From: Paragordius varius | Taxonomy: Eukaryota; Animalia; Nematomorpha | Direction of reading: 5' to 3' | Length of the DNA: 64,000 bases | Assembly: GCA_964247055.1 (NCBI GenBank) | Contig: OZ176059.1 | Location: forward strand, 1-64,000 | Part shown: positions 1-62,460 of the stretch, in pieces | Position numbering within the stretch: position 1 is the first letter of the stretch | Layout: each line of letters begins with the position of its first letter | Position numbers and translations under genes: made by a program | The notes under the pieces: model-generated | Databases searched by the model: none | Seen by the model: the letters and a program-made list of their open reading frames with translations, nothing else | Told to the model about the DNA's origin: nothing

Positions 1-3000
1 CCTAACCCTAACCCTAACCCTAACCCTAACCCTAACCCTAACCCTAACCCTAACCCTAACCCTAACCCTAACCCGTGTTAAACGTTAACTTTAACGGTAC
101 TTTAACTGTAACGTACTTAACTTGAGTAACGTTATTTAACTTGAACTGTAACTTTAACTTTAACTTTAACTTTTAACTTTAACTTTAACTTTAACTTTAA
201 CGTTAACTTACCTTGGTATAAACCCCTACCCCACCCACCCCACCCCCACCCCCTCCCCCTCCCCTCCCCTCACCCCTCCCCCAACCCCTACCCCACCCCA
301 CCCTAACCCTAACCCTAACCCTAACCCTAACCCTAACCCTAACCCTAACCCTAACCCTAACCCTAACCCTAACCCTAACCCTAACCCTAACCCTAACCCT
401 AACCCTAACCCTAACCCTAACCCTAACCCTAACCCTAACCCTAACCCTAACCCTAACCCTAACCCTAACCCTAACCCTAACCCTAACCCTAACCCTAACC
501 CTAACCCTAACCCTAACCCTAACCCTAACCCTAACCCTAACCCTAACCCTAACCCTAACCCTAACCCTAACCCTAACCCTAACCCTAACCCTAACCCTAA
601 CCCTAACCCTAACCCTAACCCTAACCCTAACCCTAACCCTAACCCTAACCCTAACCCTAACCCTAACCCTAACCCTAACCCTAACCCTAACCCTAACCCT
701 AACCCTAACCCTAACCCTAACCCTAACCCTAACCCTAACCCTAACCCTAACCCTAACCCTAACCCTAACCCTAACCCTAACCCTAACCCTAACCCTAACC
801 CTAACCCTAACCCTAACCCTAACCCTAACCCTAACCCTAACCCTAACCCTAACCCTAACCCTAACCCTAACCCTAACCCTAACCCTAACCCTAACCCTAA
901 CCCTAACCCTAACCCTAACCCTAACCCTAACCCTAACCCTAACCCTAACCCTAACCCTAACCCTAACCCTAACCCTAACCCTAACCCTAACCCTAACCCT
1001 AACCCTAACCCTAACCCTAACCCTAACCCTAACCCTAACCCTAACCCTAACCCTAACCCTAACCCTAACCCTAACCCTAACCCTAACCCTAACCCTAACC
1101 CTAACCCTAACCCTAACCCTAACCCTAACCCTAACCCTAACCCTAACCCTAACCCTAACCCTAACCCTAACCCTAACCCTAACCCTAACCCTAACCCTAA
1201 CCCTAACCCTAACCCTAACCCTAACCCTAACCCTAACCCTAACCCTAACCCTAACCCTAACCCTAACCCTAACCCTAACCCTAACCCTAACCCTAACCCT
1301 AACCCTAACCCTAACCCTAACCCTAACCCTAACCCTAACCCTAACCCTAACCCTAACCCTAACCCTAACCCTAACCCTAACCCTAACCCTAACCCTAACC
1401 CTAACCCTAACCCTAACCCTAACCCTAACCCTAACCCTAACCCTAACCCTAACCCTAACCCTAACCCTAACCCTAACCCTAACCCTAACCCTAACCCTAA
1501 CCCTAACCCTAACCCTAACCCTAACCCTAACCCTAACCCTAACCCTAACCCTAACCCTAACCCTAACCCTAACCCTAACCCTAACCCTAACCCTAACCCT
1601 AACCCTAACCCTAACCCTAACCCTAACCCTAACCCTAACCCTAACCCTAACCCTAACCCTAACCCTAACCCTAACCCTAACCCTAACCCTAACCCTAACC
1701 CTAACCCTAACCCTAACCCTAACCCTAACCCTAACCCTAACCCTAACCCTAACCCTAACCCTAACCCTAACCCTAACCCTAACCCTAACCCTAACCCTAA
1801 CCCTAACCCTAACCCTAACCCTAACCCTAACCCTAACCCTAACCCTAACCCTAACCCTAACCCTAACCCTAACCCTAACCCTAACCCTAACCCTAACCCT
1901 AACCCTAACCCTAACCCTAACCCTAACCCTAACCCTAACCCTAACCCTAACCCTAACCCTAACCCTAACCCTAACCCTAACCCTAACCCTAACCCTAACC
2001 CTAACCCTAACCCTAACCCTAACCCTAACCCTAACCCTAACCCTAACCCTAACCCTAACCCTAACCCTAACCCTAACCCTAACCCTAACCCTAACCCTAA
2101 CCCTAACCCTAACCCTAACCCTAACCCTAACCCTAACCCTAACCCTAACCCTAACCCTAACCCTAACCCTAACCCTAACCCTAACCCTAACCCTAACCCT
2201 AACCCTAACCCTAACCCTAACCCTAACCCTAACCCTAACCCTAACCCTAACCCTAACCCTAACCCTAACCCTAACCCTAACCCTAACCCTAACCCTAACC
2301 CTAACCCTAACCCTAACCCTAACCCTAACCCTAACCCTAACCCTAACCCTAACCCTAACCCTAACCCTAACCCTAACCCTAACCCTAACCCTAACCCTAA
2401 CCCTAACCCTAACCCTAACCCTAACCCTAACCCTAACCCTAACCCTAACCCTAACCCTAACCCTAACCCTAACCCTAACCCTAACCCTAACCCTAACCCT
2501 AACCCTAACCCTAACCCTAACCCTAACCCTAACCCTAACCCTAACCCTAACCCTAACCCTAACCCTAACCCTAACCCTAACCCTAACCCTAACCCTAACC
2601 CTAACCCTAACCCTAACCCTAACCCTAACCCTAACCCTAACCCTAACCCTAACCCTAACCCTAACCCTAACCCTAACCCTAACCCTAACCCTAACCCTAA
2701 CCCTAACCCTAACCCTAACCCTAACCCTAACCCTAACCCTAACCCTAACCCTAACCCTAACCCTAACCCTAACCCTAACCCTAACCCTAACCCTAACCCT
2801 AACCCTAACCCTAACCCTAACCCTAACCCTAACCCTAACCCTAACCCTAACCCTAACCCTAACCCTAACCCTAACCCTAACCCTAACCCTAACCCTAACC
2901 CTAACCCTAACCCTAACCCTAACCCTAACCCTAACCCTAACCCTAACCCTAACCCTAACCCTAACCCTAACCCTAACCCTAACCCTAACCCTAACCCTAA

Positions 3001-3030
3001 CCCTAACCCTAACCCTAACCCTAACCCTAA
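1..3030. repeat. Telomeric repeat array (CCCTAA)n / (TTAGGG)n, chromosome end
   Basis: Perfect CCCTAA hexamers at 1-74 and about 301-3030, C-rich strand on + as expected for a left chromosome end; ends abruptly at ...CCCTAA|CAATTCG. Confidence 0.97.
75..300. repeat. Degenerate block within distal telomere (CTTTAA-type, then CCCACC/CCCTCC variants)
   Basis: Runs of actttaactttaac at about 140-210 and C-rich hexamer variants at 226-300, between perfect arrays. Confidence 0.7.
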
Positions 3031-3260
3031 CAATTCGTTTATAAAAATAATTTCTCCATATTTTTTTTAATTGTAACCAATACTATTTTAACATTAATGA
3101 TATTTGTAGAAAACTATAATAAAAAATAGTTTCAAGCGCCGGCCTTTGAAATAAAGATAAGGTTTCTATCTTGAATCCCTTAACATTTAAAATAAAAGTA
3201 AGTTTTTTTTTAATACAATTGGAGGAAACTCAATTCCATACATAGTCGATAAAGGCAAGA

Positions 3261-3524
3261 TACAGTTAACAGTAAAATCATACGGACAAAATGTAAAAAT
3301 ATAGATATAGACAATTTTTTTTTTCTTAAAAACAACATACATTTAAAACCCTATAATTATTTTAGTTAAACCTCATTGTTTTGGACTGTAAAGTATGAAT
3401 TAAAGATGAAATTGGTAAAACAACCATTTATTCTTTACAATTAATTTTAGAAAGTATGGTTTTCGTTTGAAAAAATAATGTTGTATTTTTACGGTTTGTC
3501 CGTATACTTTCAATTTTTACTGTA
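3261..3524. mobile_element. Palindromic MITE, Tc1/mariner-like (family M)
   Basis: Left ACAGTAAAA..TACGGACAAAATGTAAAA; right TTTTACGGTTTGTCCGTATA..CAATTTTTACTG|TA. Confidence 0.7.
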
Positions 3525-9800: not shown

Positions 9801-10079
9801 TGAAACATAGTTCTGATTATAAGCTATACCAACACACTTTATTATATTATTTATCATTTGCTAAATATACCATCGGGTATCGCCCAATTAATTATGTATT
9901 ATCTTATTACAATTCTGTTTTATATACCGGGCACAAACTTTAACCTTATTGTGATTACCTCCCAGGCAGCATTTTAAGCCAAATGTTTTTCGTTTAAATG
10001 AATATAAAAACGAATAAGATGATTATCATACATATCCAACTTTTCACATATCTACTTAAGTGTTTCACACATTTATTAA

Positions 10080-10268
10080 TATACAGTTTAGAGTCTTTTT
10101 TCCTTTTTATTAAAGGGTAAGGACTTAAATTTGTATCCGGACATGTGAAGGCTTTAACACTCGCCTGCCCAGGGCTGACAGTGATGATGGAAAAAATGCG
10201 TAGTTTCGGGGTTCGAACTCTGGCACGCAGAGTTAGAGTCCGGCGTCCTACCTACTATACCATCACGC
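10080..10268 (-). mobile_element. tRNA-derived SINE, copy 1
   Basis: Minus strand: A-box TGGTATAGTAGG, B-box GTTCGAACC; body shared with the 19.4 kb copy; flanked by a 25-bp direct repeat CTTAAGTGTTTCA(C/T)ACATTTATTAA at 10055-10079 and 10269-10293. Confidence 0.8.
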
Positions 10269-12251
10269 CTTAAGTGTTTCATACATTTATTAAAAAAACT
10301 ATAATGAGCTTAAAGCTTTGCCTATAAAAATCAAAGATCCCTATTTTACTTTGGTGAAACGCCTGTTATACAAGAATTACCACAGAATATAAACGTCCAA
10401 TATTCTCATTCTTTTTACATATTATGAATTGACCCTGTGAAAGATCTATCAAAACCTTCAATACTTTAAACCCATTTCTTTTCCAGATGGTAATTTTAAC
10501 AACTTCGTAGCATTGAAAACCATGATCACTGTAATTCCAGTAAAAAAAGACAATATAGGCAACCATGCTTTGGAAAACACTGTTTTTTCTTGAAAGCTAT
10601 ATAATAACACTTTTAAAATATATAATTAACTTTGCAATTATATCTCTTTTCCTTTTTTAACCAAAGGACGGGTTTTATTATGAATATCAATGTTTTATAT
10701 AAACTAGCTTTTAAGTTTTTCTGGATAATTTCAATTTTCGCAATATCCCGTCATTATTTGTAGCGTTTTCCGTCTTATTTAATTTACTAATTTTAGACTC
10801 CCAAAGTATTTTATTTTCTTTACAAGTCTCCCTATTTTAACTGATCTCTTCTTTAAAACGTACTATATTGTAGTATCAATTTCCCATGGTTTTTTATATT
10901 GTTTTCCGCTTTTTATACCACAAAACTTGTTTATTCTTTAAAACTGATTCTAATTTGCGACCATCATTTATGCTCTAAACGCTGTACCCGTAAAACGCCT
11001 TCTTTTTGACACCTAATTTATTTTTTTGATTGACTTATGACAGCTAATTGATTTTCTCTATATTATGCCGTAAAATCATATCCGGACAAATTATATAATA
11101 AATTTATTTTTGTATAGGGACTTTCCGATTTTTCTGCACAAAATATTGTTTCTTACTAAAACAAAGTCATTCGTTTCTAGATATCCATACATCTAACTAC
11201 TAAATTTTTATAAATCAACAATTTCAGAGCCTGGCTGGCCCGATTTAATGTTATATCTCAACAAAGATTTTCCTAATTTATTGCAAGCATGTGGTTTCGG
11301 ACAAATATAGGATAATTTTAATGTAACTAAGTGGATAACAATCTCAAAAATAATTCCTATCAAATTATATCGTTTAATTTAAGATATTATCAGGAAATTA
11401 ATTTTTTAAAATAATTCGTATTTGCCACAAAATTTGGCATTAAATATATATTACTTGTTATTTGATCTCTTAAAGCTACCATGCAAAAATTATTAATAAT
11501 GAATAAAGTAAAAATAAATACAACAGACAAAACGTAAATGGGCAAACATTTTTTGAAAAGACAACCATATATTTAAAACCTTGTTTTTTCGTATAACTCG
11601 TCGTTGGGTCCAAAACAAAATATAGAGTGATTGGTAACAAATAACTCAATTGCTATTTATATTTGTTATCCTAAATGTATTGAAAAATCAAGGTTTAAAT
11701 ATGTGTGTTTTTTAAAAAACTTGTCTTTTAGTTTTAAGACCCTTTATAATAGTTGTTGTATGTTCATTAATATAATTACTTTGTATGAAATCTAATTATA
11801 TTGATTATCAATACATGCATACTTGATTCACTCATAGCTGTATAAATTTTAAATTATTTCATTACCATGCAAATGGGTTTCAAGTCTTAGCCCAGTCATG
11901 CGTAAAACTAAAAAATAATATTTTAAACCAAATTTAAAATTATAATATTGATTAAACACAAGAGATATAAGAGAAAATTATGTGAATCAATTCGAAATAT
12001 TTAAAAACATATATGAGAAGATCATGGACTGCCATTTTTGCCATTTATATAGGCACGAGTGGCAATAATAACCCTCTATTTACTTATGAAGGAAGGAGAG
12101 ATACATGGTATTTTTGGTTTTGTAAAAAAGCCACCTACTCTTGTGCGATAATGAAGTGGATAAAAATGGTTTAATGTTTCATACAGTATTTTAAATTTTT
12201 AAATAATGACAATGCCATTTAATCGTTGTAAAAAAAGCTGGTTGAAACTTA

Positions 12252-12524
12252 CAGTAAAAATTGAAATATACGGACAAAACGTAAAAAATCTAAAATATTT
12301 TTTCTTCAAAACACAATCATACTTTTAAAACCTTAATTATTTTATAAAAATTATTTATTTCAATTGTGAAATAAATTTATTGTTTTACAATTTTACATCT
12401 TTATATCATACTTTACCGTTCAAAACAATGATATTTTAAATAATTATTTAAAATTATGGTTGTCATATGAAAAAATATTCGTCTTTATATTTTAAATTTT
12501 GTCCGTATAATTTCAATTTCACTG
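12252..12524. mobile_element. Palindromic MITE family M
   Basis: TA|CAGTAAAAATTGAAATATACGGACAAAACG ... TTTTGTCCGTATAATTTCAATTTCACTG. Confidence 0.75.
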
Positions 12525-14156
12525 AGATTTTTATTAGAAGACTAATAAATATGAAAAATTTTAGCTTTTAGAGAAATATAGTAAGCGTTAATAATATAAT
12601 GAATGGTTTTACAATTTTAGAAATATATACAAGTATAACTAAAGAGTGATATTACATACCGCTTATACATTTAGAAATTTTTTGATTAAACTTCAAATCC
12701 CTAAAAATCGTGGATTTTAACAATTTCTATTTATAAATTGTGGTTACCGGTATTTTAATTATGCGGATAGTAATCTGTTATTGTCGAATAAAGTAGAAGA
12801 ATGGAAAATCAAAAAGTTAGGGAATCAAAAATTTATTTTATCAATTATAACAGCAATCGTTAAATACAATATACTGTTATTTATTCTAGTTAATAAATAT
12901 TAAATCTAAACATTTGGATCATTGGTAAATCTTTTGGACAAATGGTGTCCAAGGTCCTACATGAGTCGGCTAGGTCGTTATATGCGACCACTTAATATTT
13001 GCAAATCCATATCTTTCATTAATGTTTTCACAAGTGTTGTGTAAGAAATAATAGTTCTCAGTCAAGTTTTTTAGGGCAATAAATCAGAAAAAATTTATTG
13101 TGTTGGCAATACAGTCTTAAGAATTTGATAAAATATTTATTAATAATTATATAAATTAATATAACCGACGAATTTTGACACCCTGATTTATGTTATCTAT
13201 TGCTGATTAAAAAAAATTATTAAATTTATCAAAATAACGATGTAGAGAGCTGTTTTATTAGAAGATCATCTGTTTTATATTTATTCTCATAAAAAGTATG
13301 CGGCCCGAGAATTAGGTTGACACCGTGATTTAGGTTATCATTATTGTTTTTCTAGTAACTTTATAAATTTTCTCTAAATTTTGAATTTTGTTGCCATATA
13401 TTCGAAATTCACGAAAAATAGCCTTTTTTGATTTTTATTATGATCACTTTACCATTTTACATGTTTTGTATTGCAAATCACTACTAAACTTAAACTAGTT
13501 AATTAATAGTTTTGTTTTTATTAATATTTATTGTATATTTTTAGTATTATTAGTTTCTATAACGCTGCAAAAATAAATTTTAATCATAAAACATTAAGGA
13601 AGCGTTTTTAAGTTGGAGTATTTAATGATTTTAGATTTTAGCCGAAGGCGCCCATTTTGTTAAAAGCTGCGACGTTAAAATACCATTTTCATCCTTCATT
13701 GACTTTTAACATATAAAAATATATTATGCATGTCCAAATTCTGTTTTTCCGGTCAAATATTGTTACGAAACAAATTGAATCAACATAAAACACATTCTAA
13801 AAATTGGTCAAATATATGTAAAAATTTAAGTTTTAAAACGAAACATTTATGCATTACATGGCTTAACGGCTGGATTTGTGCAACCGCTCAAATGTAATGA
13901 AAATAATTAAAATTTATGTTAAATCTGCTAAATAGCAAATATTATTCGTTATTATGTATAAATATTTTCCATACCTCTTCCAAGAAACCTGGTGTCTTTA
14001 GTTATAAAATTGCATTAAACATATTAAACGTTAAAATTAAAAGATAAATATTTTTTTAAAAAAGACAGTCGCACTCTTTTAAACCATGATATTTGAATAG
14101 TGCCTCTCACCAATATACATCTACATTCTATATTTTGGGAGCCAAAATTCACATGG

Positions 14157-16574
14157 TTAAAAAGTATTGCTATCTAAAAAAAATATTAGTTTTAGATGTT
14201 TGCGTTAATCTTATAATTTTGATTTCTGTGTCTAGATTATTAATAATTTATAAAAACTTACTCGTAACTATATTTTCCGCTTCATACACCACATTCTCTG
14301 CCCCTAAATATATATATGAAGTTTAGAATGAAATAAATTGATTTGTGTATTCAGTTGCTTTACCAGTTTCTATATTGTATAGAGCTAAATATATAAGAAA
14401 TTATATAATATCTAATAATAGTATTTAAAAAATATTTATAAAAATTACAACCTGCTTTTAAATGATACATTCCTATCATTATACACATTTAAATAATGAT
14501 ATATTCCTTCAAATGATAAATTTTAATATACTATGGTGATAGTTATACCGTATCGATCCACGATTTCTCGGGCTATATTATTTTAAAAATTGTTAAATAT
14601 TATTGCGTCTTATATTAATTTTGATATAAATTTTACCATTTTCAATTTCTTCTAGTGTGTGTTCTGGTCTATCAGCTAAATAATACAATATAACTATGGT
14701 TTTTACAGTAAAAATTGAAATTATACTGACAAAACGTATAAAGGCAAGTATCTTTTTCTAAAAGACAATTATACTTTTTTAATCATGATTTATTTCAATA
14801 AAACTCATTTAAATGGAGTGTGAAATAGAGATATATAGAACTAGCACAATCAATTTATATTTTACAATTGTAACTAAATAGCTCCTTAAATTTAATTTAA
14901 AAATATGGTTGTCTTTTAGATAAAATTTTTTTTTATATTTTGACGTTTTGTCCATAAAATAATTTCAAGTTTTTTTGTATTTTCATTTGTACCGCATTTA
15001 TTTTCAAAATTACCAATATCGTCTGTATCCAATGCATTCTCCGCTGGTGGATCTAATTAAAAAACAATATTATCGATAGATATGCAACAACTAATAATCT
15101 CATAATCTGGAAAATATAAACTAAATTGCCATATATAGAGTAAATGAAATTATACGGACAAAACGCAGATTTATAAAGACAACTATTTTTTCCAAATAAC
15201 CCTTTTCTTTTATTATGATTTAAATACTTATCTTGCTTATAATTTTAAAATTTGTAGCGTTATATATCACATTCAACTATATATTTTGCAAAAATGGTTT
15301 TTTTATCAAAAAAAATAGTTGTTTTTATTTTACGGTTTGTCCGTATATTTCAATTTTATTTAAAATAGTCAATATGTAACTACTGGAAGTTGAAGTTGAT
15401 TGAGAAGGTTGATTGGTTTCATGGTCAGATCTTGAGTTTCTTTCTGGATTTTCTTGTCGTTCTTCAATACTATTTTCTTCAACAGCTGGGTTTTCGTTGT
15501 TTGCGCGATTTTGTGCTACATTTTCACCCAACTCCATATCATTGACGCCTTGGGCGACAGCAATCACTTCTGGTGTTTCCGAAGCTCCGGCTCCGACCAC
15601 GGCTAAAATGAAAAATGACATTAATATTGGCAAACTTACAAAAAGTTAAATTTTTTACATTTAATGCATATTAATATATCAACATTAAAAACTAATTTAT
15701 AGGTACCAGGTACATATACCAACTCAGTCCTCAAACTAAATGATAAGCTTTGATATACTCTAAAATACATGAGGGACGGGGACAGTATGGCACTTGAAGA
15801 GAAGAGTTATAAATAAACCATGTCTTACTCCTTTAAATATATTACCCCTTTCGATTATATTAACCTGTTAAAGTTTGAAATCCCTGACACGCTTTTACAC
15901 AATATTATAAACTAACGACAAAAAAAATAGTAAAAGTTTAGGAGTCATAAAAAGTTATAGCCAAATAGTCAACTGTTTATAACCTTTTCAAAGATATTTA
16001 ATGCATTGCGCTGACTCAACCCCTATTTTATTCTGTTAGAAAAAGTTTATACAAAAAACTATATGATACAATATGTGTCTCAAACAAAAAGTAAAATTAA
16101 ATAACATACCACCAATCACACCTGTTTTAAATATTTTTATCAATAAATTTTATAAAAATAAAAATATAAAAAATTTACCTGTCGCCGCGGCTATATGTAT
16201 ATACATTGTACCATTTTAACAAATTTTAACTAATCCTACTATTATTTTAGCTGATAACTAATTTTTACCCCCAATTAATGCAGCAGTTTGACCAACTAAG
16301 TTCCCACTCTTTTTTGGACTATTTTGTTTTTTTGGATAAATTAATTTGCTATGATCAACATTTAGTTTCTTTCTTTGTGTTCGTTTTGCGATTTGTGAAG
16401 AAAAGGTATTATGCTGATCCGATATTGGAATGTTCTTTTTTTTATCAACAAAAGTTTGGATGTAAAATGAGTTTTTCGATATTTCTGAGAGAAAGTATTC
16501 CATGGTAACCGCCACTAAAACAAGAACGTAGTTTACAAAATTGATTTCTAGCAATTCTTACAATTGGAATTCAT
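14157..16574 (-). CDS. Micro-exon gene, about 227-aa orphan protein (basic N-terminus, Gly/Ala hydrophobic segment, acidic disordered C-terminus)
   Basis: Exons (minus): 16574-16562, 16514-16269, 16190-16179, 16121-16110, 15602-15384, 15052-15014, 14675-14637, 14572-14549, 14384-14364, 14303-14262, 14173-14157. All introns GT-AG and phase 1; joined length 684 nt, open from ATG to TAA: MNSNLAVTMEYF...TAALIGAAATGVIGAVVGAGASETPEV...NPPAENALDTDDIADRPEHTLEEIENAREIVDRYALYNIETGAENVVYEAENIVTNSNTF. Confidence 0.72.
14706..14980. mobile_element. MITE family M in an intron of the micro-exon gene
   Basis: TA|CAGTAAAAATTGAAATTATACTGACAAAACG left end; degenerate GTTTTGTCCATAA..TTTCAA right end. Confidence 0.7.
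15138..15360. mobile_element. MITE family M in an intron of the micro-exon gene
   Basis: GAAATTATACGGACAAAACG ... CGGTTTGTCCGTATATTTCAATTTT inverted pair. Confidence 0.7.
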
Positions 16575-17252: not shown

Positions 17253-17840
17253 ACCATTTGCACTTAAAGAGTGTCCTTGAACACTTCAAGTTGGTCCTTA
17301 AAATTTTTAAAATTTGAGTTATCCGTAATTGCATGCATTTTTTTATTTATAATTTTTATACTTTTCTTTATTTATTATAAAATTATTCATTTAAAAATAA
17401 AAATTTTTTATACAAAAACCATTTTATTTCTAACAATTTTTTTTCAATTTAACAAAATTATTAACTGTTAAATGGTTTTCAATGAATTGTAAATAACGAC
17501 CCAGAAAACTTATATATTTTTTAATTAGGTTAAAATCTTATAAATATCCATACAAATTTTAGGAAATTAAAAAAAGATATCCGGTTTCTCAATGATTAAA
17601 GGTTGATATTGATTTAAACTTTATGTTAAAATTTTGAAAATAGGTCAAAAATGATAAAATAGATCAATGATTTTCGATTTGATTAATAAAAGTTTAAAAC
17701 AAAACAAAAAAGTTAAAGGATTAAATTGAAATGTTCAAGGACCAACATGAAATGTTCAAGGACCAACTTGAAGTGTTCAACCAACTTGAATTGTTGAATC
17801 AACTTGAAGTGTTTAAGGATTCTCTTGAAGTTCAAATGAT
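17253..17840. mobile_element. Foldback element family A (21-bp GAACAATTCAAGTTGGTCCTT units)
   Basis: AT|ACCATTTGCACTTAAAGAGTGTCCTTGAAC left, TCTTGAAGTTCAAATGAT|AT right; the internal ~400 bp is shared with the copies at 27.2, 52.6 and 60 kb. Confidence 0.8.
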
Positions 17841-19269
17841 ATGTAAATTATTAGTTAACCCTTATCTCTCCAACATAAACTATTTATTAATTAGGGTATA
17901 TATTATGTATATTATTTTTGCAGCTTAAGTGATGAGTTGTAATATAATCAACATATTTAAATTGTTTAAAAATACTTTAATTCTTTATCTGTATAACTTC
18001 ATTTTCAACTATTCACCGTCGACCGAATAAGGAGTTATATAGATTAATTACAATTTAATGATATTATTTTAAAAAAATCATATTTAATCCTTAATTTTTG
18101 TGATATCCTATCGTTGTGTGTCGCAAAATAAGGAATATATTTGTTTAATGTCATAAGAAATGATTATATTTTAATATCATATGTGTAAAAATTTTTATGG
18201 AAAAGTTATGTATTAATAAATTATAGCCATCTTCCGAGAAAAAGATTCGTTCCTTAGCTTTATTTTTTACTGACTTAGGTTTAAAACGTAGTCACCGATC
18301 TTACAATATATTTATTGCGTATTTTCGAAAATGGCTAAAAATATAGCCTTCCACTCAAAAAAAATATTGATGCCTTTCTAAGTTAGATAGATATTAACCC
18401 TATGCATATTTCGTTAAAAGCATAAATTGAATCAAACGGCTTAAAGGTTTTTCTATATTGGTCAGTCACTCATAGAATAAAAAATTATGAGTAATATTAA
18501 AGGCTCCTAATAAATTCAAAGTTTAATCAAACTGTTCATCCCATCCGAATTTGACAAATCCTATTTATAATTTTTAGTAAATTATTATGTTAAATAAAAT
18601 ATGTTTTTAATAACATCATATAAAATTAGCTTTATCAGAGCTATATTAAGTATATTAAAAAATGTGAATGTTTAATAAAATTCTGGATAAATTCATACGA
18701 TAAAAGCGAAAATAAATAATATCTAATTTCAAACATTATTATTATCATCTTTTTGATTTATAAAAGCATGATTCGGGATAGGAAATTCTCTTGTTTATAT
18801 ATATACTCAAGAAATCTCTTTTAGGCTGGTAAAGAAATATGCTACTTTTTTTAGAAGATATTATTATTATTATTATTTGTTTTCTATTATATACTGTGTT
18901 CAATTGGTCGCTCCTAAATTTGGCACCGCACAAAATTATAAGACTAAAGGTGAAAACTAAAGATAAACATTTTTGAAATAAACAGCTATACTTTTTACAC
19001 TGTTTTTAATAGAAGTTTTGACGTTGAATAGGGAATAAAGATATTATAACACACTATATTAATTTTTCACAATAGTAATCATTTATGTTATTGTAAAATA
19101 TTTCTTTTGGCCTCTTTACTGTATTTTATGCGCATGAATGGGTCTAAATTTTGCATTTTTATTAAATATCTTTAACATATATGGGTAAATGGTCAACATA
19201 AGTTAAAAACACATACCGGATTTTCTGTGTGTTTTTATAAAAGATAATATATTTCCTTTATATAATTAC

Positions 19270-19706
19270 ACTAAATCTGAAATTATACGGTTAAAATGGA
19301 AAGAGAATAGTATTTTTAAAGACAACCATACTTTGTAAATCCTAATTTTTTAAATATAAAAATGTACAGTTTAGAGTCTCCTTTTTTTATTTGGATTAAA
19401 GGGTAAGGATTTAAATTGTATCCCGACATATGAAGGCTTTACACTCGCCTGCCCAGGCCTGACAGTAAAGTGATTATGAAAAAATTGCGCAGTTTCGTGG
19501 TTCGAACTCAAATAGTGTGAGAGTCCTGCGCCGTACCTACTATACCAACTACAAAGTATAATATAGAATTGTAAATTGGTAACACATTCAATTATGTATT
19601 TTACGATTGTAAAGATTTTTATAGAATAATTTAAGATATAAAAAAGTGTGGTTCTCTTCAACTTCATATTTTTCGTTTTGTCCGTTTAATTTCTATTATC
19701 ACTGTA
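19270..19706. mobile_element. MITE family M interrupted by a SINE
   Basis: Left TTACACTAAATCTGAAATTATACGG, right GTTTTGTCCGTTTAATTTCTATTATCACTG|TA; SINE inserted inside. Confidence 0.6.
19365..19551 (-). mobile_element. tRNA-derived SINE, copy 2
   Basis: Same A/B boxes (TGGTATAGTAGG, GTTCGAACC), body (GGCCTGGGCAGGCGAGTGTAAAGCCTTC) and tail (GACTCTAAACTGTA) as copy 1. Confidence 0.8.
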
Positions 19707-26665: not shown

Positions 26666-27212
26666 ATTGTGCTATTTTATCAGCAAAATCTTAAGCATAA
26701 AAAAATATGGTTATTTTACTAAACTCTATCAATTAAATTTCCCATTACATACTTAACCTCAGGCTGTCAAGATGATTCTGTACATTATTGGAAATATAAA
26801 TAGATGGCTTATTTAAAATATATGATATACAATATAAAGAGCCTATTATTATCTACACATTGCATTTATTGTTAAGAACAAAAATAATTAATAATATTTG
26901 CAGAATATAAAACTTTTTTGAGTACCTTTTATAGATAGATATCTGTTCGTCAGAAATTAATTTTTGCCTTAAAAAAACTTTATCAAAAAAATTATATTAT
27001 TTTATTAGTATCTGTTTTTATTGTAATAAATTATCACAATAAGCCTAATTAATTTTGGGTTCATTATCTTCATTAGCCATTTAAATTGAAATAAGGCTTA
27101 ATATGTTTTCAAATAAACATTATCGTTTAATTAATTTAACCCCGATAATTATCTACAAGTCTTTAAGTGCATTATATAGCCGTATATGAAAAATATCCTT
27201 ATGAAATAATAT

Positions 27213-27902
27213 ACCATTTACACTTCAAGAGTGTCCTTGAACAATTCAAGTTGGTCCTTGAACAATTCAAGTTGGTCCTTGAACAATTCAAGTTGGTCCT
27301 TGAACAATTCAAGTTGGTCCTTGAACAATTCAAGTTGGTCCTCGAACAATTCAGGTTGGTCCTTGAACAGTTCAAGTTGGTCCTTAAACATTTCAGTTGG
27401 TCCTTAAAATTCATAAATTTTGATTTAACCATAATTTTTGCATTTATTCTTTTATTTTATTATTTATTAACCTAATTTTCATTATTTATTATATATTTAT
27501 TCATTTAAAAATAAAAATTTTTATTGAAAAACCACTTTTTTGTTTCAAACTATTTTTTTTTCAATTGAACAAAATTATTGACTTTTAAATGTTTTTAATG
27601 AAAAAATTTAATTAATAACCCAGAAAACTTATATATTTTTTCATTTTGTGTTAAAATCTTATAAATATCTAAATTTATTTTAAGAAATTAATAAAGATAT
27701 ACGGTTTTTCAAAGATTAAAAGTTGATATCGATTTAAATTTTATGTTAAATAATAGAAAATAGGTTAAAAACAATAAAATAGATGAATTATTTACAATTT
27801 GATTGATAAAATTTAAAAACAAAACAAAAAAGTCAAAGGACCAACTTGAATTGTTCAAGGACCAACTTGAATTGTTCAAGGACACTCTTGAAGTGTAAAT
27901 GG

Positions 27903-27903
<1 letters not shown>
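27213..27903. mobile_element. Foldback element family A
   Basis: AT|ACCATTTACACTTCAAGAGTGTCCTTGAAC ... GTTCAAGGACACTCTTGAAGTGTAAATGGT|ATAT; about 8 units in the left arm and 2-3 in the right; followed by a (TA)n tract. Confidence 0.9.
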
Positions 27904-27954
<51 letters not shown>

Positions 27955-29566
27955 TAATGATGATTTTTAAATAGTAAAATATATCAGCATGATTATTTTG
28001 GTTCGAGGGCTAAGACTTATATAATAACGACTTAAATAAATGTTTTATAACAAATTGTTCAAACATAAATTTATGATATAGAAAGGTAAATTAGTATTCA
28101 ATCGTTATATAATTAATTAGTTGTTTTTTAAATTGTTTTGAGGCTTTAATTTGAATTTTTAATAGAATTTAAAAGTGTTTTTCATGGTCCTTTGGTTTAA
28201 TATATAAAATATTTACACTTTTTAAGATATGTTCCATATCAAAACGGGCATTATGCTAAAACAAATTGTATTGTCAAAGATAAGTCATGCGTCTTGACCA
28301 AGATTATTAATATTAATACACCAAAATACACAAAAAATATTCTGATGATATATATACATACATATATATAATGTGTATAAATTTAATCAATTTCTAGCCG
28401 CAAAGACAAAGGAATATTAAAAATATTATTCATATATTTCATTTTTCATGTAAAAATTGAGTCTTGCAATGATAGTGCAAGCCAGACCTGGCCAGTCGCT
28501 GGACAGAAGAGAAGATATGGACTTATACGGATAACAAATTATTTTATTTTTTATTATGATGACTTAAATTACTGAAAAACAATTAAAGTTTATTCACAGA
28601 TATTACAAATAAAAATGGTTATATATATGGGCAAATATTTATTTATTGATCGTGACACATATAGGCCATCTAATTTAAAAAAATATATTTTACTTACTTT
28701 TCATCATAATTCTGTTGTTGTGTGTGCGAGTATTTTTGTAACCATCGTCGTTTTTTATAAATTTGTTACACGCGAATAATTTAAAAAAACCGTCGCTTAT
28801 ATTTATTAACCATTACCAATGCTAATTCCCTGAGATTTATGATTGATTATTTTATGGCTCAAAATTTATATATTGTATAATAATATTTGGAATTTCTTGT
28901 ACTATCAAGTCATTTATACAAGTTATTTTTAAAAGATATTGATAACAAATAACAAGAAAATATGTAAATATACAGACAAAACGAAAAAATATATTGATAA
29001 AGGTCCCAAATATTAAATAAACTTGCTACATTTAATAAGAAGTTTTGTAGTTTGGTTTTTTTGGCTTTCAATGATAACTGATATGATCTTGGTGAACCAT
29101 TATTTAAACATAAAAAATGGTGTATGGGTTTTAGTGATGTATTACATATTAAATGGATGGCGCATTTTAAGTTAATATGATATATATTTTTAATTAATCG
29201 TCTAATTGCCAGTTAATTTAAATAAGAAAATTTTATTTTTTTTATTTGTGGCATATATTTTCTTTGAAAGCAACAAGGCTTCTTGCCCAATCAAAAATGT
29301 CGCCAGTTTTTTCAATTCACATAAAAATTATTAAGTGTTCGATATTCTACGTAATCACGTGTTTACACCCAAAATTTAAACTATGCAGAAATAATGAAAT
29401 ATCTAAAATAATCAAGTGATGTATGTGTATTAATTAATCCATGTATTTACAATTGAAATCATTTTGTTTATGTATGATATCTCAATATTTACAAAAAGTA
29501 CGTTATTTTTAGTAAAAATATTTTGTCTTATTAGATTTATATGAATAAGAAAGTTTTTGGTTATAA

Positions 29567-29775
29567 TTACCCTTGAACTTCACCCTTAAACAATTCAAAT
29601 TCACCCTAAAAATAAATTTTGTGTTTTTGAACTAAAATAACTCATTATTAATATGAAAAATACCTTTATGGAAAAAACATATATATATTATATGAGGGTG
29701 AAATTTGAATTGTTCGAGGATAAATTTGAATTGTTCAAGGATATTGTTTAAGGGTAAATTTAAAATGTAAATGGT
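29567..29775. mobile_element. Short foldback family D (21-bp AAATTTGAATTGTTCGAGGAT units)
   Basis: Right end TGTAAATGGT; inverted arms CCCTTAAACAATTCAAATTCACCC / GGGTGAAATTTGAATTGTT; left terminus eroded; units share GAATTGTTCAAGGA with family A. Confidence 0.6.
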
Positions 29776-40760: not shown

Positions 40761-41442
40761 GTTTCACGACTGAATTGGTTGTTACAATGAATTTTTACAG
40801 TCGAAAATATTCTTTATAGATGCGATGGTTAAATAAAATAGACTTATATAGACCTATGTACTTAAACATTTGGATTTTATGTTGTAATTTACAATTGTAA
40901 TTTAAAGCTCTATTATACTAAATGTTGTATGAAAACCATTGAATGAAAAGTCACCAAACAAAATGAAAATCAGGGAACTCAATAGAGAGTGCCTGGTGTA
41001 TTTATTTCTTCCATGTTTTGGGGTTGTAGGCGTCTTTAACATTTTTCGTTCCTCAACATCTTCTGTGATTTTGTGCCATATTTTAAAAGGACAACCTGGT
41101 ATATTTTTGAATCTAATTATTAATGTTGCATCTTTCTCAATATATTATCGTTTCTTGGCTTAATGTGTCCTAACCAGCTTAGTCTTTGGGATTGGAATAT
41201 ATGATCAATTGGGTCTTTTTGAAAGATTGCGTAGGCGTCTGATAGATTTGAATACACCAGTTAGCTAATTTTAGTAGACAAATTTATATATAGGATTTGC
41301 ATACTTTTTGATGACCTTTTATATTTGAATTAAACTATTGTATCAATTTTGTATTTAACATGCACACGTTATTGTACCTTGGTTTAACATCACCGCTAAT
41401 TTTATATAGTTTTGTTTTTGTATTTTATCTCAATAAATATTT

Positions 41443-42153
41443 TTGTTCGGTTTCTCGAGTGACCACATTTGGCGCGGTCGTTTTATATCATTACATTCGC
41501 GCATGGAGAAATTCAGTCTGGAAGCATATGATTCGGCAACCATCTTTGATGAATATATCGTTTATATAAATAGAATGTTAAAAGTGAAATTTATTCAAGG
41601 AGATGACAAAACAAAAAAAACTTCTTATTGGCCTACATCGGTCTATCCCATATTTAAAGTCGAAGAAATTCTTTTATCGCGTACAAGAAGTGGGCTGGGA
41701 TGCTTTGGTAGCGGCTGGAAAAAATTTTGCTCCGACATACATGTGTTTGCAGCCAGATTCCAGTTTACGCAACTCCGGGGAGAAGCCACGGAATCAGTGA
41801 TGGATTATTTTCGGGTAAAGGAATGTGCTGCCCGATGCAACTTTGGGCAAGATGCAATGCTAAGAATCAGAGATGGGTTTGTTGGAGGATTACAACTCAA
41901 AAGATTGGAAATAGATCTGTTCACGAAACTTCCAAATGCAATGTTTGATGGGAAACCTGTTACGTTGGAGATGGTGGTAGAAATGGCAATGGCGTACAAA
42001 AAGGCGGATAGTTGTTTGATTAAACAGGGTTCTGACCATAAGCAGGTGATGATAATAAAGAAGAAGTGTGGAAAATGTGGATTGCATGCGATCAACTGTT
42101 CGCTCCAAACAAAGAGTGTTACCGATGCAAAGGACGAGGTCATTAGGTGTTGA
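41443..42153 (+). CDS. gag-like ORF of the gypsy element
   Basis: RFQFTQLRGEATESVMDYFRVKECAARCNFG..IRDGFVGGL resembles retrotransposon gag; CGKCG..C knuckle remnant. Confidence 0.7.
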   Translation: MFGFSSDHIWRGRFISLHSRMEKFSLEAYDSATIFDEYIVYINRMLKVKFIQGDDKTKKTSYWPTSVYPIFKVEEILLSRTRSGLGCFGSGWKKFCSDIHVFAARFQFTQLRGEATESVMDYFRVKECAARCNFGQDAMLRIRDGFVGGLQLKRLEIDLFTKLPNAMFDGKPVTLEMVVEMAMAYKKADSCLIKQGSDHKQVMIIKKKCGKCGLHAINCSLQTKSVTDAKDEVIRC

Positions 42154-42227
42154 TGGCGAGTTAATATAGTGAATGGTAACAATAATAAAATGAAGCCCGG
42201 ACGCAAGCAAGTCTGAATGGCCATTGG

Positions 42228-43350
42228 GTGAGGATGTTATACGATACCGGAGCTCAAATATCATTGATTGGGAAAAGCACGTGGATGGAGATTGGAAGGC
42301 CGACCTTAGCACCCGCGGGTCTATTAGTTGGGTTTAACCATCAAGGTGTAGAGGCGATGGGACAATGCGTGCTAGATGTTAACTGGATTGGTATGGTCAA
42401 ACAGTTGGAATGTATGGTTACCAGGGAGGATTGGTATAACATTTTTGGGTTACCGTGGATGAAAAGCTTTCAATGTAGATTTCCAGATGATGTCTGTGTA
42501 AAGAATGTTAGTTATGTTGCTTTAAACATATTTAAGGATTTGTTTTGTGAAGGTATTGGGTGTTACACGGGACCACTCATCAAGTTGTTTCTCAAAAAAA
42601 GTAGTATCCCCAAAAGATTTGCAGCTAGGAGGGTACCTATTCCGCTTCAATCTAAGGTGGAGAGTGAATCAAAGAGGCTTGAAAGTCTGGGTATCATTGA
42701 GGCCAAAAACCTAAACACGAATTGATTGGGTAACTCCGTTGGTGATAGTTAAGAAGAATGATAATGATATTCGCATATGTGGTGATTTTAGAGTTACTGT
42801 TAACCGAAGTTCGGTTCTTGTCGATCATTTGATTCCAACGTTTGATCAGTTAGTGTTTAAAATCGGGCAGGGAAAACTTTTTACGACCTTAGATCTAAAA
42901 AGAGTGTATTGGCCAGGTATAAACGAAGACATCGAAAGTTATGTGAGATCTTGTATGGGGTGTCAGTTAAACCGGGGTAACATAAAAGGCAATCCCACGT
43001 ACGAATGGAATTTTAATACGGGTATCTGGGAACGGGTACATTTGGATATTGCCGGTCCTATTGATGGGTTTTATTGGTTTGTAGCTATCGATAGTAGCTC
43101 CAGATGGGTTGATGTCGAATTGCTAGGAACTGTTAATTCTGCAAACATATTACATTGGTTAGAAATTTGGTGTGTAAGGTACAGGTTTCCCCGAATGATA
43201 GTTACCGATAATGCATCATATTTTGCATCGAAGGATTTAAAAGATATCTTGCAACGAGCAAACATTAAACATGTCACTAGTGCCCCCTATCATCCACGAA
43301 CAAATGGGATGGTGGAACGGGTTATTTACACCTTAAAAGAACACTATTAA
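42228..43350 (+). pseudogene. pol remnant: protease, RT N-terminus fused to integrase
   Basis: LYDTGAQISL; IRICGDFRVTVN..TTLDL joined directly to KRVYWPGINEDIESYVRSCMGCQ; WERVHLDIAGP, IVTDNASYF, PYHPRTNGMVER. Confidence 0.85.
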
Positions 43351-44580
43351 TCACTAACGGATTCTAAGCTGACTCCTGACAAAAAATAAATCAAGTGTTA
43401 TGGGGTTATCGCTCCGCCGTACATAGCGCCACAAAAGAGTGCCCGTATAACTTATTTCTGAAAAGAAATATAAATACCCCTTTTTTGGGTTAGGGAAACA
43501 CCTTCACAACAATTAGAGGACGACATTATACCCAATCAAGTTTTTACGGACGAAGAAGTGTACATAAAGAATGAAATCAATTCGGGGTGGAGAAAAGTTT
43601 TAATTTTGGAGAGAACAGGGGTACTCTCGTACACGGTAAAAGATAGAAATCGAACTCTTCGCAAACCAGATCAATTACGGCCGACCGGCGTCGAGAACGG
43701 CGGAGATGGGGATGATGGTGGTTTAACGATAAACCAAACGGATGAATGTGTTACAACCAATAATCGGGAGGTGGGGAAGGAACAAAGCAAAGAAAACGAG
43801 AAAGACACCCAGGTTGAAATGAAAACGGAAAAGACAATTGAGAAAGAACCTGAAAGAAGATATCCTCCTAGGGAAAGAAAAGCACCAGATCGGCTGGGAT
43901 TCGGATAAGGAGATATGATAGATTTGAATACATTAGTTAGCTAATCTTAGACTAACAAATTTATATATTAGATTTGAATACATTTTTGATGACAATTTTA
44001 TATAGTTTAGTTTTTGTATTTTATCTCAATAAATATTCTTGTTTTACGGTTTATCGAGTCACAGCGTCAAAACTATTATTGAAACTTTTGGATAAGTTTA
44101 ATGTAAAAGTATTGTCTGGAGGATTTAATATCTGTTCCTAAAATTTTATTTTTATTAGTTTTAGTCAACGGGCATGTTTCTGCGCCGTATGTAAGGGCTG
44201 GTCGTATCGCTGTAGTGTACATTTTTGCTTTGTAATGTTTATTAATTTGTTGTTATGCTTGATTTAATGGTATTTTTCCACTCTTATTGGATCGGTGTTT
44301 TATTCATTAACTATACCTCCTTTAGTGGTAATAACGTGGCGGAGGTATATAAAGGAATCTACTGTTTTAATTGCATGTGGGTTGTAAATAATTGGTTTTG
44401 CACTTTGAATGGATGTTAACTCATTCCATGGTTTACATAGGAAGTGTAGAATGTCCAAGGATGGGACAAAAATACTTTTTGTGTACCCACAAACTGCAAC
44501 GTGTGCACATTAAGGAGTTAAATTTGATATCTTTGCTACAAACACTACAGGCATACTTTGTTTTTTACCAATAGCGTCTG

Positions 44581-48551: not shown

Positions 48552-51249
48552 CCATTTCCCAGTCTAAATAAACGTTTTCCCAGTCAATCGAAACATTTTC
48601 CCAATCAATCGAAACGTTTTCCCAGTCAATCGAAACGTTTTCCCAGTCAATCGAAACATTTTCCCAGTCAATCGAAACATTTTCCCAGTCAATCGAAACG
48701 TTTTCTCAGTCAATCGAAACATTTTCCCAGTCAATAAAAACATTTTCCCAATCAATAAAAACGTTTTCCCAGTCAATAAAAACGGTTTTATTTTTATGGT
48801 AAATATCAAAACAAGATATAAAAATAACTTTTAACCATTATCAGCGTAAAATTAGGATATTGTTTTTATAAAAACACAATTATTGAATGACAATTTTTCC
48901 AAGTATATTCCAGTGCACAATCATTAATGACTTATTCTTTAAATGTTATATTTTTGGAATATGAGTTAAGATAATATTTTTTATTTTATCTATGGTTCGC
49001 ATTAATATATGCGGCTAACTTATACCTATAGTTACGGATAAAATAACAAAATTTATAAAAATATACCATTTTTATCACAAAAGTCATTTAACACTTTATA
49101 TTGGATCTTAACATATATTTTACGCTAATTTTATAATATATAACATTTGAATGGGGGCCTTTTTAAATATCTTTGAGCGGGCCGCAAAAAATTTGAAAAC
49201 CATATGTAAAAATATGCCCACAAAATCTTAGTAATATTCATGTATCTTACGCAATCATTATAAATGAGTCAATTAAATTGGTAACGAATTAAAAAAAATT
49301 GTTATATTGTGTTTGTATTTTACATTCTTAGAAAATTATGTGAATGCCCGTATATATTTCGAATGGGGAACCGCGTGCTTTTTGAGTTAAAAATGCGGCC
49401 CGCGAAGGCATTTAGTTGGACACCCTTGTTTAGTAAAATCTCCTTTTTATTAAATATTTTTATATCAAAAACATTTTTATTAAAAAAAATTCGTTAAGAT
49501 ATTTTTTCCGATAGTATTTTTATCGACAAACCGGACATATTTAAAAACTATTGTGAAGCGTTCCACAAATATTAATGCAAACTATCGCTAAAATAAATAT
49601 TATCTTAACTCAAATTCCTAAAATATAACATTTAAAGAATAAGTCATTAATGATTGTGCACTGAAATATACTTGGAAAAATTGTCATTCAATAATTGTGT
49701 TTTTATAAAAACAATATCCTAATTTTACGCTGATAATGGTTAAAAGTTATTTTTATATCTTGTTTTGATATTTAACATAAAAATAAAACCGTTTTTATTG
49801 ATTGGGAAAACGTTTTTATTGATTGGGAAAATGTTTTTATTGACTGGGAAAATGTTTCGATTGACTGAGAAAACGTTTCGATTGACTGGGAAAATGTTTC
49901 GATTGACTGGGAAAATGTTTCGATTGACTGGGAAAACGTTTCGATTGATTGGGAAAATGTTTCGATTGACTGGGAAAATGTTTCGATTGACTGGGAAAAC
50001 GTTTATTTAGACTGGGAAATGGTATATATATATTAGAATCATTTTCCTTTCATATGAGATAAATAAAAACAATGGCATAAGGACTTTTGTAAGCTTTAAT
50101 ACTCACCTACCAGGGTAGACAGTCATGACACTTAATGTTAAATATATTTATGTGAAAATATTAATATAAATGATGGAATACCAACAAATTTAGTTTCCCA
50201 AGTTCTATAAGCATAACCATTCACAAAAAGGACTAAAGACTCATTAGGGACCGCTGTTATATTAGCACGGATTGACCCGTTAGATACTTCAGAAATTCGA
50301 TTGAAACTATAAAGAATTAATTGACACGTTTTTGCTAAATTTGGGTCATTAAACAAATCAGAACAATCTTCCTCAAATATAAATCGCCCATTGTAGCTCC
50401 TGTATTCCGTCAAAGGGTAGGAGACTATAATATAGTTTTCAAGTTTTTTTCCATCTATGGTAATGATCAAATTTCCAGCATAATCACATTTACCAGGTAT
50501 GTTAAAAATTAATTTCGTTTTGTTTGACACTTGGAAGGGCACTCGTTTTCCATATTTGGTAGTTATTTGAATGGTAGGGGGTGTTTTGGAATTTTTAAGA
50601 GGTTGCCAAAATTCAGCTATATCAAATTCACACTTTTTTATCTGATTCGGAGATACCTCTATGGTATCTGTATGTTCTATATATCGAAAAATTACAATTT
50701 AATATAGGAGAAAAAATATCAATTGATAAGGTTAAATTGAGAAAATAATCTTTACAGAGCGTGTAACAATACATCTACTGTTTAGTTATTCAATGATATT
50801 TAACCAAAAGAATAAAGTATATATATGCAATTCCAAATCAAAATTTAAGGATTTAAAATATTTGTTAGAACATACAAGTAGCCTCTGGTTATCATACAAA
50901 AAACAGCAATTGCACAATGTTAGAGTATCTTATTAATAAGGAATATACCTTCAATAAAAATTTGTCCACGGCTAACTGTCACGCCATTTTTCAGTACTGA
51001 ATAAGGGCCGTCCACTAGATTTAATTTAGGTGCTATCTCTTGATTAAGAAATTGACTATAATTGACATTACGGTAAGAAAATGTTCTGTACGCAAAATTG
51101 ACAGTTATGTTAGCTCTCCCTTTGTAGACATCAAGAAGTTCATAATAATATTCGTCACCAAATCTAACCCATATATCTTTTGGCTTTGGTTGAGATTGAG
51201 CTAATACACCGTAGAACCCAAATAGGAATAAAATTGATAGTGGTATCAT
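47114..51249 (-). CDS. Orphan secreted protein, about 423 aa, 4 exons
   Basis: Exons 51249-50949 (signal peptide MIPLSILFLFGFYGVLA), 50676-50182, 48147-47890, 47331-47114; all GT-AG phase-1 introns, open reading throughout. The exon 3-4 join is less certain; an alternative stop lies at 47822. Confidence 0.62.
48551..50023. mobile_element. Foldback element family C (21-bp CAATCGAAACATTTTCCCAGT units) in intron 2 of the secreted-protein gene
   Basis: (AT)n|ACCATTTCCCAGTC ... GACTGGGAAATGGT|ATAT; near-perfect inverted arms of ~460 bp around a ~550-bp loop. Confidence 0.92.
49150..49430. mobile_element. hAT-like MITE remnant within the foldback loop
   Basis: GCGGGCCGC and GCGGCCCGCG..TTGGACACCCTTG, typical Charlie-like subterminal and terminal sequence. 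Confidence 0.45.
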
Positions 51250-51399
51250 TTCAAAAAAATTAATAGCCTTGATATAATTTTTGGAAGTCTTATATAGAGA
51301 ATAAAAATGCCTACAGTATTGAAGGAGATTAAGTAAATATTTTTAAATTTGGAAATAAAGAACGATATAACTGACTAAATAAATATTTTTAAATTTTTT

Positions 51400-61213: not shown

Positions 61214-62460
61214 ATGGTAGTCAAGTCATATTCATTTAATCAAAATAATTCATGTTTGGAGACACAATGTTTAGTTATACAGTGTTCGAACGAAATTCCT
61301 TCCTGGCAATTGGAAATGCCAATTTCCCAATTCGATACTTTCTTACAAGTGGTAATTTGGCCGATCCTCTCCATAGCCGGCATCTTGGGGAATGCTTTTG
61401 ACCTCATAATATTACGACGAATAAGAAGACATATGACATTTCCAGCTAGTCAGTCGTATTATTATTATTTGACAAGTCTGATTTGGATCAATTTTTGGAA
61501 TTCAATCCTGAGTGTCGTGCATGAAATGCGTCAGATATGTATGAAAATTAAGGATTCTCCATTTGTTGCTAATCCTAACCTTCTTAAAAGCCTTTATGTA
61601 GCACTAATGTTATCTAATGGCTTGGAAGTTGGAGGAACAATAGTTTTAGCATTCATGTTAAGGGACCAGTATGTCTCGTTGGTCCATCCTTTACAACAAT
61701 ACAAACAATACTGTGCAAAATATAGGCTAATTAAGCTCTCTATTCCATGGATAAGTTGTATACTAGCTATCGCCTTTTCATTTACTGCCTTTTTTTGGTA
61801 TAACGTAGAAAAATGTTGGAAATTTAATTGCCCATTTTTAAATGTTACGCAAGACAATTACTTTTATCTTTTATCAAGCGATTTGAAGGAAAACACAGTA
61901 ACAAGCGAAAAGATATATTACTTTGATCGTGAAATATTTGTACTGTATTGGGTAGGTTATTATGATATAATTCGTATGACCCTTTTCTCTATTCTTCCCA
62001 CTTTGATAATCCTGTTTTATGGCATAAAACTAACGTATCTGATAGGGTTAGTGAGACAGGACTCAAATACTCGTAAAAAATATCTTGGCTTGCATTTTAA
62101 GTTTAAAACTATGGAAACTATACAAATTTATACTATAAATGTGAATGAATCTGTTAGAAAAACTACCTCTGTCAAAATAGCTTAACTAAAGAAGCGAGGA
62201 GATTATCAACACTCAATAAAAATGATAAATTGCCAACAGAGCCATTAATAAGAGATTTATCGAACCTTATTTTCATCATATCTTATTGCATCTGTCAATT
62301 GCCAAACGTAATAATGATAACAGCTCGCGAACAAATACAAAATCCTACACTAATTTTGGTTTCGGACACGTCTGTTCTAATGCTTCACACTATGATAGTA
62401 TTTGTTTACATGTTTTGCGACAAAAATTTTCATAAATATTTCCCGCACTGTAAACTTTGA
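61214..62460 (+). CDS. Rhodopsin-class (class A) GPCR, peptide/chemoreceptor-like, split in the third intracellular loop
   Basis: TM1 WPILSIAGILGN, TM3 end RDQYVSLVHP, TM5 LFSILPTLII in 61214-62185; TM6 SYCICQLP and TM7 in the other frame, open from 62158 to 62460. Can be joined by a GTGAGA..TTAG intron (62051-62157) or a 1-nt indel in the A5 run at 62158. Confidence 0.8.

Follow-up and report, generated by a model that had tools for sequence, protein, structure and literature searches.

Is the chain of very small putative exons that can be drawn close to a chromosome end of the nematomorph Paragordius varius a genuine gene, and if so, of what kind? The locus lies on the minus strand at positions 14157-16574 of the window, i.e., the whole stretch of 64,000 nucleotides (nt) analyzed here (contig OZ176059.1, assembly GCA_964247055.1, positions 1 to 64,000). 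An earlier note had proposed that it is a subtelomeric gene built entirely from symmetric phase-1 exons, on the logic of the Schistosoma micro-exon genes (MEGs). Our analysis of the sequence makes it moderately probable that a real protein-coding gene occupies the minus strand at ~14.2-16.6 kilobases (kb) and would specify a small acidic, membrane-anchored protein with no detectable relatives. Counting membrane-anchored and secreted products together, we regard a real gene core comprising exons 2-8 and 10 as quite probable.

The telomere-proximal position ascribed to the locus holds: a perfect (CCCTAA)n telomere repeat occupies positions 1-3031 (~3 kb), which identifies a chromosome end, and the 3' end of the gene lies 11.1 kb from it, with transcription directed toward the telomere. 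Outside this repeat the window is very AT-rich (~25% GC). When rebuilt from the sequence, the model came out exactly as first drawn in its exon chain, exon sizes, AG/GT boundaries, phase and 227-residue open frame: 11 exons and 10 introns, with the exons splicing to 684 nt, or 227 codons, ending in a TAA stop. All ten introns are in phase 1, i.e., they split a codon after its first base; the acceptors are all TAG or CAG and the donors all begin with GTA. The nine internal exons are each a multiple of 3 in length and of phase class 1-1. The introns measure 47-88 nt, except introns 4 (507 nt), 5 (331 nt), 6 (338 nt) and 8 (164 nt). Consistent with the description of most exons as GC-richer islets, exons 2-8 and 10 have a GC content of 0.32-0.83, as against 0.07-0.28 in the introns. 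In the order of transcription, the exons are as follows.

16562-16574, minus strand: exon 1, 13 nt, from an ATG to a GTAAGA donor, GC 0.23; coding unsupported
16269-16514, minus strand: exon 2, 246 nt, predicted basic N-terminal region followed by the first part of the putative helix
16179-16190, minus strand: exon 3, 12 nt, GC 0.83 against 0.07-0.21 in introns, Ala-Ala-Ala-Thr of the putative helix
16110-16121, minus strand: exon 4, 12 nt, Gly-Val-Ile-Gly of the putative hydrophobic helix
15384-15602, minus strand: exon 5, 219 nt, end of the putative helix, an Ala-Gly-Ala/Ser site and an acidic Asn/Glu-rich stretch
15014-15052, minus strand: exon 6, 39 nt, acidic module with an Ala-Glu-Asn-Ala-Leu-Asp motif
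14637-14675, minus strand: exon 7, 39 nt, acidic module loosely resembling exon 6
14549-14572, minus strand: exon 8, 24 nt, supported, with GC 0.54 and a contrast of 0.36
14364-14384, minus strand: exon 9, 21 nt, GC 0.29, omissible in frame and indistinguishable from chance candidates
14262-14303, minus strand: exon 10, 42 nt, supported, with two Ala-Glu-Asn-(Val/Ile)-Val motifs and a GTAAGT donor
14157-14173, minus strand: exon 11, 17 nt including the TAA, GC 0.18; unsupported

For exons 1, 9 and 11, the splice dinucleotides are the sole point in favor, and exons 1 and 11 are as AT-rich as the introns; hence, the contention that the gene is built entirely from symmetric phase-1 exons goes too far. 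Exon 1 might represent the last part of a 5' exon preceding a well-formed 47-nt intron, and an in-frame ATG at 16501-16503 (residue M9, context ACCATGG), 11 nt past the exon 2 acceptor, is an equally good start. At the other end, if the exon 10 donor is unused, the frame stops five codons further on, at the TAA of 14248-14250. That any subset of exons could be skipped in frame is borne out across all exon combinations of the model: no junction makes a stop, since T is the last base of exon 1 alone and none of the exons starts with AA, AG or GA.

How much of this could arise by chance? We applied dynamic programming to 2.4-kb pieces taken arbitrarily from the window, drawing in each the longest possible series of phase-1 exons that are symmetric, free of stops and bounded by AG/GT; the median length was 438 nt, with the 95th percentile at 930 nt. 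The same search at the locus gives 924 nt, and the internal exons originally selected total 654 nt. An open phase-1 chain is by itself unremarkable in this window, and the reservation voiced in the earlier note, namely that exons picked by eye favor frame-compatible choices, was justified.

The evidence for a real gene lies elsewhere, beginning with the codon periodicity of the exons. The seven micro-exons carry G at codon positions 1, 2 and 3 in the ratio 33/6/13 over 63 codons, a position-1 share of 0.52 as against 0.21 for a GC-matched null. The rest of the window offers 555 phase-1 candidates for micro-exons, and none of 20,000 GC-matched draws of seven from among them matched this share; with the donor-adjacent last exon base excluded, it was matched in 1 of 50,000 draws (P about 2e-5). 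When GC contrast and G at position 1 are considered jointly, six of the seven rank in the top few percent of 621 phase-1 candidates, and the remaining one, exon 9, ranks as a chance candidate (joint tail 0.11). Exon 5 displays the strongest periodicity of all the exons (G 32/9/6, P = 2e-6), its position-1 share exceeding that of all 91 control open frames. Further, exactly two phase-1 candidates of 12-15 nt exist between the exon 2 donor and the exon 5 acceptor, and these are the chosen exons 3 and 4; both encode only small or hydrophobic residues, a property shared by 26 of 135 background candidates. Exon 2 draws its chief support from the 72 codons that precede the putative helix, which are open in the frame set by the downstream exons (P about 0.002). 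Coding-like phase-1 micro-exons are concentrated in the locus and almost absent from 6.6 kb of flanks, with no further such exons in the 3.7 kb downstream or the 2.9 kb upstream. Checks of this kind, which leave less room for choices made by eye, support a real gene core. More specifically, the proposal of a phase-1 micro-exon gene survives as a probable intron-rich gene, whose supported introns are in phase 1 and which has real-looking micro-exons of 12-42 nt, with exon 9 as the unsupported member.

One further GC-rich islet, in intron 4 (15758-15802), was considered as an exon and set aside, as its 24-nt candidate (15769-15792) has no G at codon position 1. On the minus strand, this 24-nt segment has AG/GT boundaries, keeps the phase-1 frame and codes for Pro/Cys; it may represent debris, a cassette exon or an exon that is not used.

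Variation at the locus offers a separate line of evidence. The variants are single-base differences in the contigs of four public DNA runs, 40 of 131 differences being listed. Half of the listed exon changes (8 of 16) are synonymous, as against an expected 22% (P = 0.012), and the frame of the model yields more synonymous changes than each of the other five frames. The excess is most evident in exons 5 and 7, where four of the five listed changes are synonymous (P = 0.009), the one in exon 7 among them. The listed variants also include one in-frame 3-nt deletion in exon 2. Single positions in exon 2 (16301, 16344 and 16495 in runs X1, X4 and X5) are spanned by as many as 5-8 distinct contigs, and one X1 contig differs from the window at 17 of 177 letters (16192-16368), the adjacent contigs being identical to the window. 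These multiple contigs represent alleles that have diverged or else paralogs located in other parts of the genome. Contig depth was discarded as a measure of copy number, since it sums contigs and varies 10-fold within introns.

The product predicted from these exons, of ~210-227 residues and lacking Cys and Trp, falls into three parts. Its N-terminal region of ~70 residues is basic, the first 76 residues of the protein containing 14 K/R as against 5 D/E. There follows a 25-residue Gly/Ala-rich hydrophobic stretch (residues 77-101), joined from exon 2, exons 3 and 4, and exon 5, and then Ala-Gly-Ala/Ser. The C-terminal part of ~125 residues is acidic and Asn/Glu-rich (29 D/E against 7 K/R), is probably disordered, and repeats a Glu-Asn-hydrophobic motif in exons 5, 6, 7/8 and 10; exon 5 and four or five small phase-1 exons encode it. 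The earlier observation that an obvious N-terminal signal peptide is lacking and that the hydrophobic segment is internal thus stands, the first such stretch being that at residues 77-101. The best 19-residue Kyte-Doolittle mean is 1.86 with both 12-nt exons and 1.34 without them. The features predicted from the sequence fit a type II signal-anchor, viz., one 25-residue span, a positive N-terminal flank and no cleaved N-terminal signal.

The pattern in the sequence, its coding-like periodicity and the distribution of the variants are observed directly; the splicing, expression, topology and function of the gene, as proposed in what follows, are predictions. The helix would act as a signal-anchor, leaving the N-terminus in the cytosol and the acidic tail outside; this type II topology is predicted because positive charge precedes the helix and negative charge follows it, in keeping with the positive-inside rule. 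Symmetric 1-1 exons are the usual pattern for extracellular modules, and the tail most probably grew by duplication and insertion of small exons of this class, which would account for the uniform phase 1. Splicing is expected to be largely constitutive; frame-neutral skipping is possible, and nothing suggests that it occurs. The two 12-nt exons would be structural parts of the span, because the hydrophobicity falls from 1.86 to 1.34 when they are left out, and such a role suggests either that they are included constitutively or that the product switches between an anchored and a soluble form.

Several observations weigh against this account of a membrane-anchored protein and have to be set beside the alternatives. 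Of the long exons, exon 2 is the least secure: its periodicity is not significant (G 17/8/11, P = 0.17), and 11 of the 16 exon variants listed fall within it, seven of them non-synonymous, making it the most variable part of the locus; moreover, the variants are the 40 listed of the 131, and the contigs may mix alleles with paralogs. Both long exons are open on the opposite strand too, and no AATAAA or ATTAAA is found within ~450 nt past the stop of the model or 550 nt past the alternative stop. Five runs of unknown kind contain the stretch, none of them recorded as RNA, and the four examined (X1, X3, X4 and X5) are DNA because their contigs cover introns; runs X4 and X5 (share 0.25) had been candidates for exon-only RNA and were rejected for the same reason. 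All joints listed for contigs of the DNA runs fall in transposon copies. Five runs guessed to be RNA, under the same species label, contain next to none of the sampled words; this absence from five small transcriptomes does not prove a silent gene. Among relatives, the exon 2 peptide has no homolog among 1.84 billion representative proteins in a full HMMER search, the exon 5 peptide no match among proteins of 40-126 residues in a word-index search, and neither long-exon peptide nor the 55-residue helix region belongs to a Pfam family; Atlas searches with both long-exon peptides gave no lead, and tblastn detected no paralog in the window. By these searches, the gene is most likely an orphan with no detectable relatives. 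The same lack of homologs and RNA would be expected were there no gene at all, with the GC-rich islets being transposon debris or chance and the frame a product of eye-picked splice dinucleotides in AT-rich DNA. Open phase-1 chains of the above median length can be drawn nearly anywhere in the window, where GC-rich islets are frequent and stop-free runs of at least 70 codons number ~95 in 61 kb. However, the G periodicity of the micro-exons and of exon 5 would be hard to select by eye, the synonymous excess is confined to the frame of the model, and the helix runs in frame through the sole two 12-nt candidates. We therefore consider it unlikely that the locus is not a gene.

If the gene is real, its product might still be secreted rather than anchored, with the Gly/Ala-rich stretch serving as the core of a signal peptide that is cleaved after Ala-Gly-Ala to release the acidic tail. 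Signal-peptidase sites carry small residues at -3 and -1, and the Ala-Gly-Ala/Ser-Glu-Thr after the hydrophobic stretch suits this. Either the long N-terminal extension would form part of a signal peptide of unusual length, or splicing of a 5' exon would make use of a weak internal acceptor at 16295/16296, reducing exon 2 to a 27-nt micro-exon and bringing the gene nearer to the design of the MEGs and of the bicycle genes of aphids. Such a phase-1 candidate exon exists at 16269-16295, with an AG acceptor and coding-like composition (G at position 1 0.56), and the 219 nt of exon 2 upstream of it are weakly periodic (G 12/6/10) and the most variable part of the locus. In contrast, the internal acceptor is preceded by the purine-rich gtgggaacttag, whereas T-rich tracts precede the ten other acceptors, and the upstream segment has marks of coding of its own: the 72 open codons, the ATG in its ACCATGG context and the in-frame 3-nt deletion. 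Nor does a signal-like first exon stand out upstream; in the 15 kb searched for a phase-1 signal-peptide exon, the few candidates with hydrophobic sequence are either rich in AT or located within repeats. Secretion by either route strikes us as improbable. A MEG-like variation system, in which symmetric phase-1 exons are combinatorially skipped to give a pool of variants from a subtelomeric family, is very unlikely. It agrees with the phase-1 symmetry of all the exons and with the freedom from stops of every skipped junction, and the several contigs per position on exon 2 (up to 8) could mean paralogs elsewhere, but these may equally be alleles of pooled or heterozygous material, and the window holds no paralog. 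No isoform is seen, the runs examined being DNA; further, only 28% of the coding sequence is in micro-exons, the signal peptide is absent, and the helix would drop below the threshold for a membrane span if both 12-nt exons were skipped, which favors their constitutive use. The type II membrane-anchored protein remains the account that we prefer.

The window also contains repeats, and two copies of one family make up most of introns 5 and 6 of the gene.

15130-15360: copy of a miniature inverted-repeat transposable element (MITE), an inverted-repeat transposon with ends TATACGGACAAAAC, making up most of intron 5
14702-14968: MITE copy making up most of intron 6, with a summed contig depth ~1000x that of the flanks in four DNA runs

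This depth over one copy indicates that the genome holds very many copies. In the window, the MITE-like family, with elements of ~230-290 nt, ends TATACGGACAAAAC and long foldback arms, is found at 3270-3524, 12245-12531, 14702-14968 and 15130-15360. Another element is present in two copies, 76-84% alike, at 17260-17850 and 27199-27972, whose inverted ends consist of a tandem 21-nt unit, GTCCTTGAACAATTCAAGTTG; a third fragment of the 21-nt GTCCTTGAACAATTCAAGTTG array is seen at 29701-29772. The notion that the gene sits inside a transposon bounded by these repeats was dismissed, as those at 17.3-17.9 and 27.2-28.0 kb are both upstream of the gene and do not enclose it. Two look-alike GC-richer islets do flank the gene, at 9997-10270 and 19374-19685, each in a minus-strand frame of 85-104 codons; a further repeat family probably accounts for them, and they do not form terminal repeats around the gene. 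Farther away, a degraded retroelement of the long terminal repeat type lies on the plus strand at 41437-43905, with frames matching an aspartyl protease, an integrase (rve, 1.4e-10) and an integrase zinc-binding domain; the frames scanned gave no reverse-transcriptase match. An intron-less plus-strand frame of 323 codons at 61214-62185 has several hydrophobic segments and resembles a multi-pass membrane receptor, with no Pfam match at E up to 0.1. Two adjacent minus-strand frames of 186 and 140 codons (50141-50698 and 50923-51342) have a protein-like composition and no Pfam match, and may belong as exons to a further orphan gene. Scanning the window with Rfam and for tRNAs gave no matches.

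Taken alone, the locus is modest, an orphan gene whose small acidic product would sit in the membrane or be secreted. Nevertheless, it is a compact test case, being 2.4 kb long with only two 12-nt candidates, such that the presence or absence of 24 nt would decide whether a membrane span is kept or lost. It also bears on annotation, in that standard gene finders would miss such genes. Were phase-1 micro-exon genes to be a feature of this genome, the design seen in the MEGs of flukes and the bicycle genes of aphids would extend to a third animal lineage. One could then conceive of the locus as a small representative of a class of micro-exon genes that are uniformly in phase 1, occur throughout the genome and lie outside flatworms and sap-sucking insects; at this locus, regulated skipping of both 12-nt exons would shorten the helix from 25 to 17 residues and switch the acidic protein between anchored and soluble or secreted forms; we see this as distinctly unlikely.

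This leaves the question of what kind of gene the locus most resembles. MEGs are characterized by a coding region divided mostly among very small symmetric exons, by a signal peptide on every product and by splicing that yields pools of variants (PMC4350168). The locus is like them in its small multiple-of-three exons that could be skipped in frame, all nine internal exons being of class 1-1 (exon 9 among them, which is unsupported). Its product too is acidic, probably disordered, without homologs outside its lineage and predicted to be exposed at or beyond the membrane. Unlike in MEGs, exons of at most 42 nt account for 189 of the 684 nt of coding sequence (28%) and the 246- and 219-nt exons for 465 nt (68%); there is no N-terminal signal peptide, the hydrophobic stretch beginning at residue 77, such that anchoring would possibly be by an internal helix. 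The locus also has no sequence similarity to MEGs. On these counts the Schistosoma parallel drawn for it fails.

In the bicycle and megacycle genes of aphids, nearly all internal exons start at codon position 2; the products of the bicycle genes have signal peptides and CYC motifs, and these genes average ~17 exons, most of which are tiny (PMC9168663). The uniform intron phase of the locus recalls these genes with their many micro-exons, and they evolve too fast for sequence searches. In contrast, the product of the locus has neither cysteine nor an N-terminal signal, and two ordinary exons supply two thirds of its coding sequence. Phase symmetry and disorder of exons have been the subject of earlier work (PMC3632108).

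A broader parallel is offered by the class 1-1 exon modules of metazoan extracellular proteins, which follow the exon-shuffling rule. Akin to these, the symmetric phase-1 exons of the locus encode segments predicted to be disordered and extracellular, which could be inserted or duplicated in frame, and a short acidic motif recurs in exons 6, 7 and 10; unlike them, they contain no recognizable shuffled domain, and the modules of 8-14 residues are far below the size of domain-sized exons. Thus, the locus shares some of its gene structure with the MEGs and the bicycle genes and is a member of neither; in general terms, it comes closest to a modular architecture of 1-1 exons that would encode a disordered extracellular tail.

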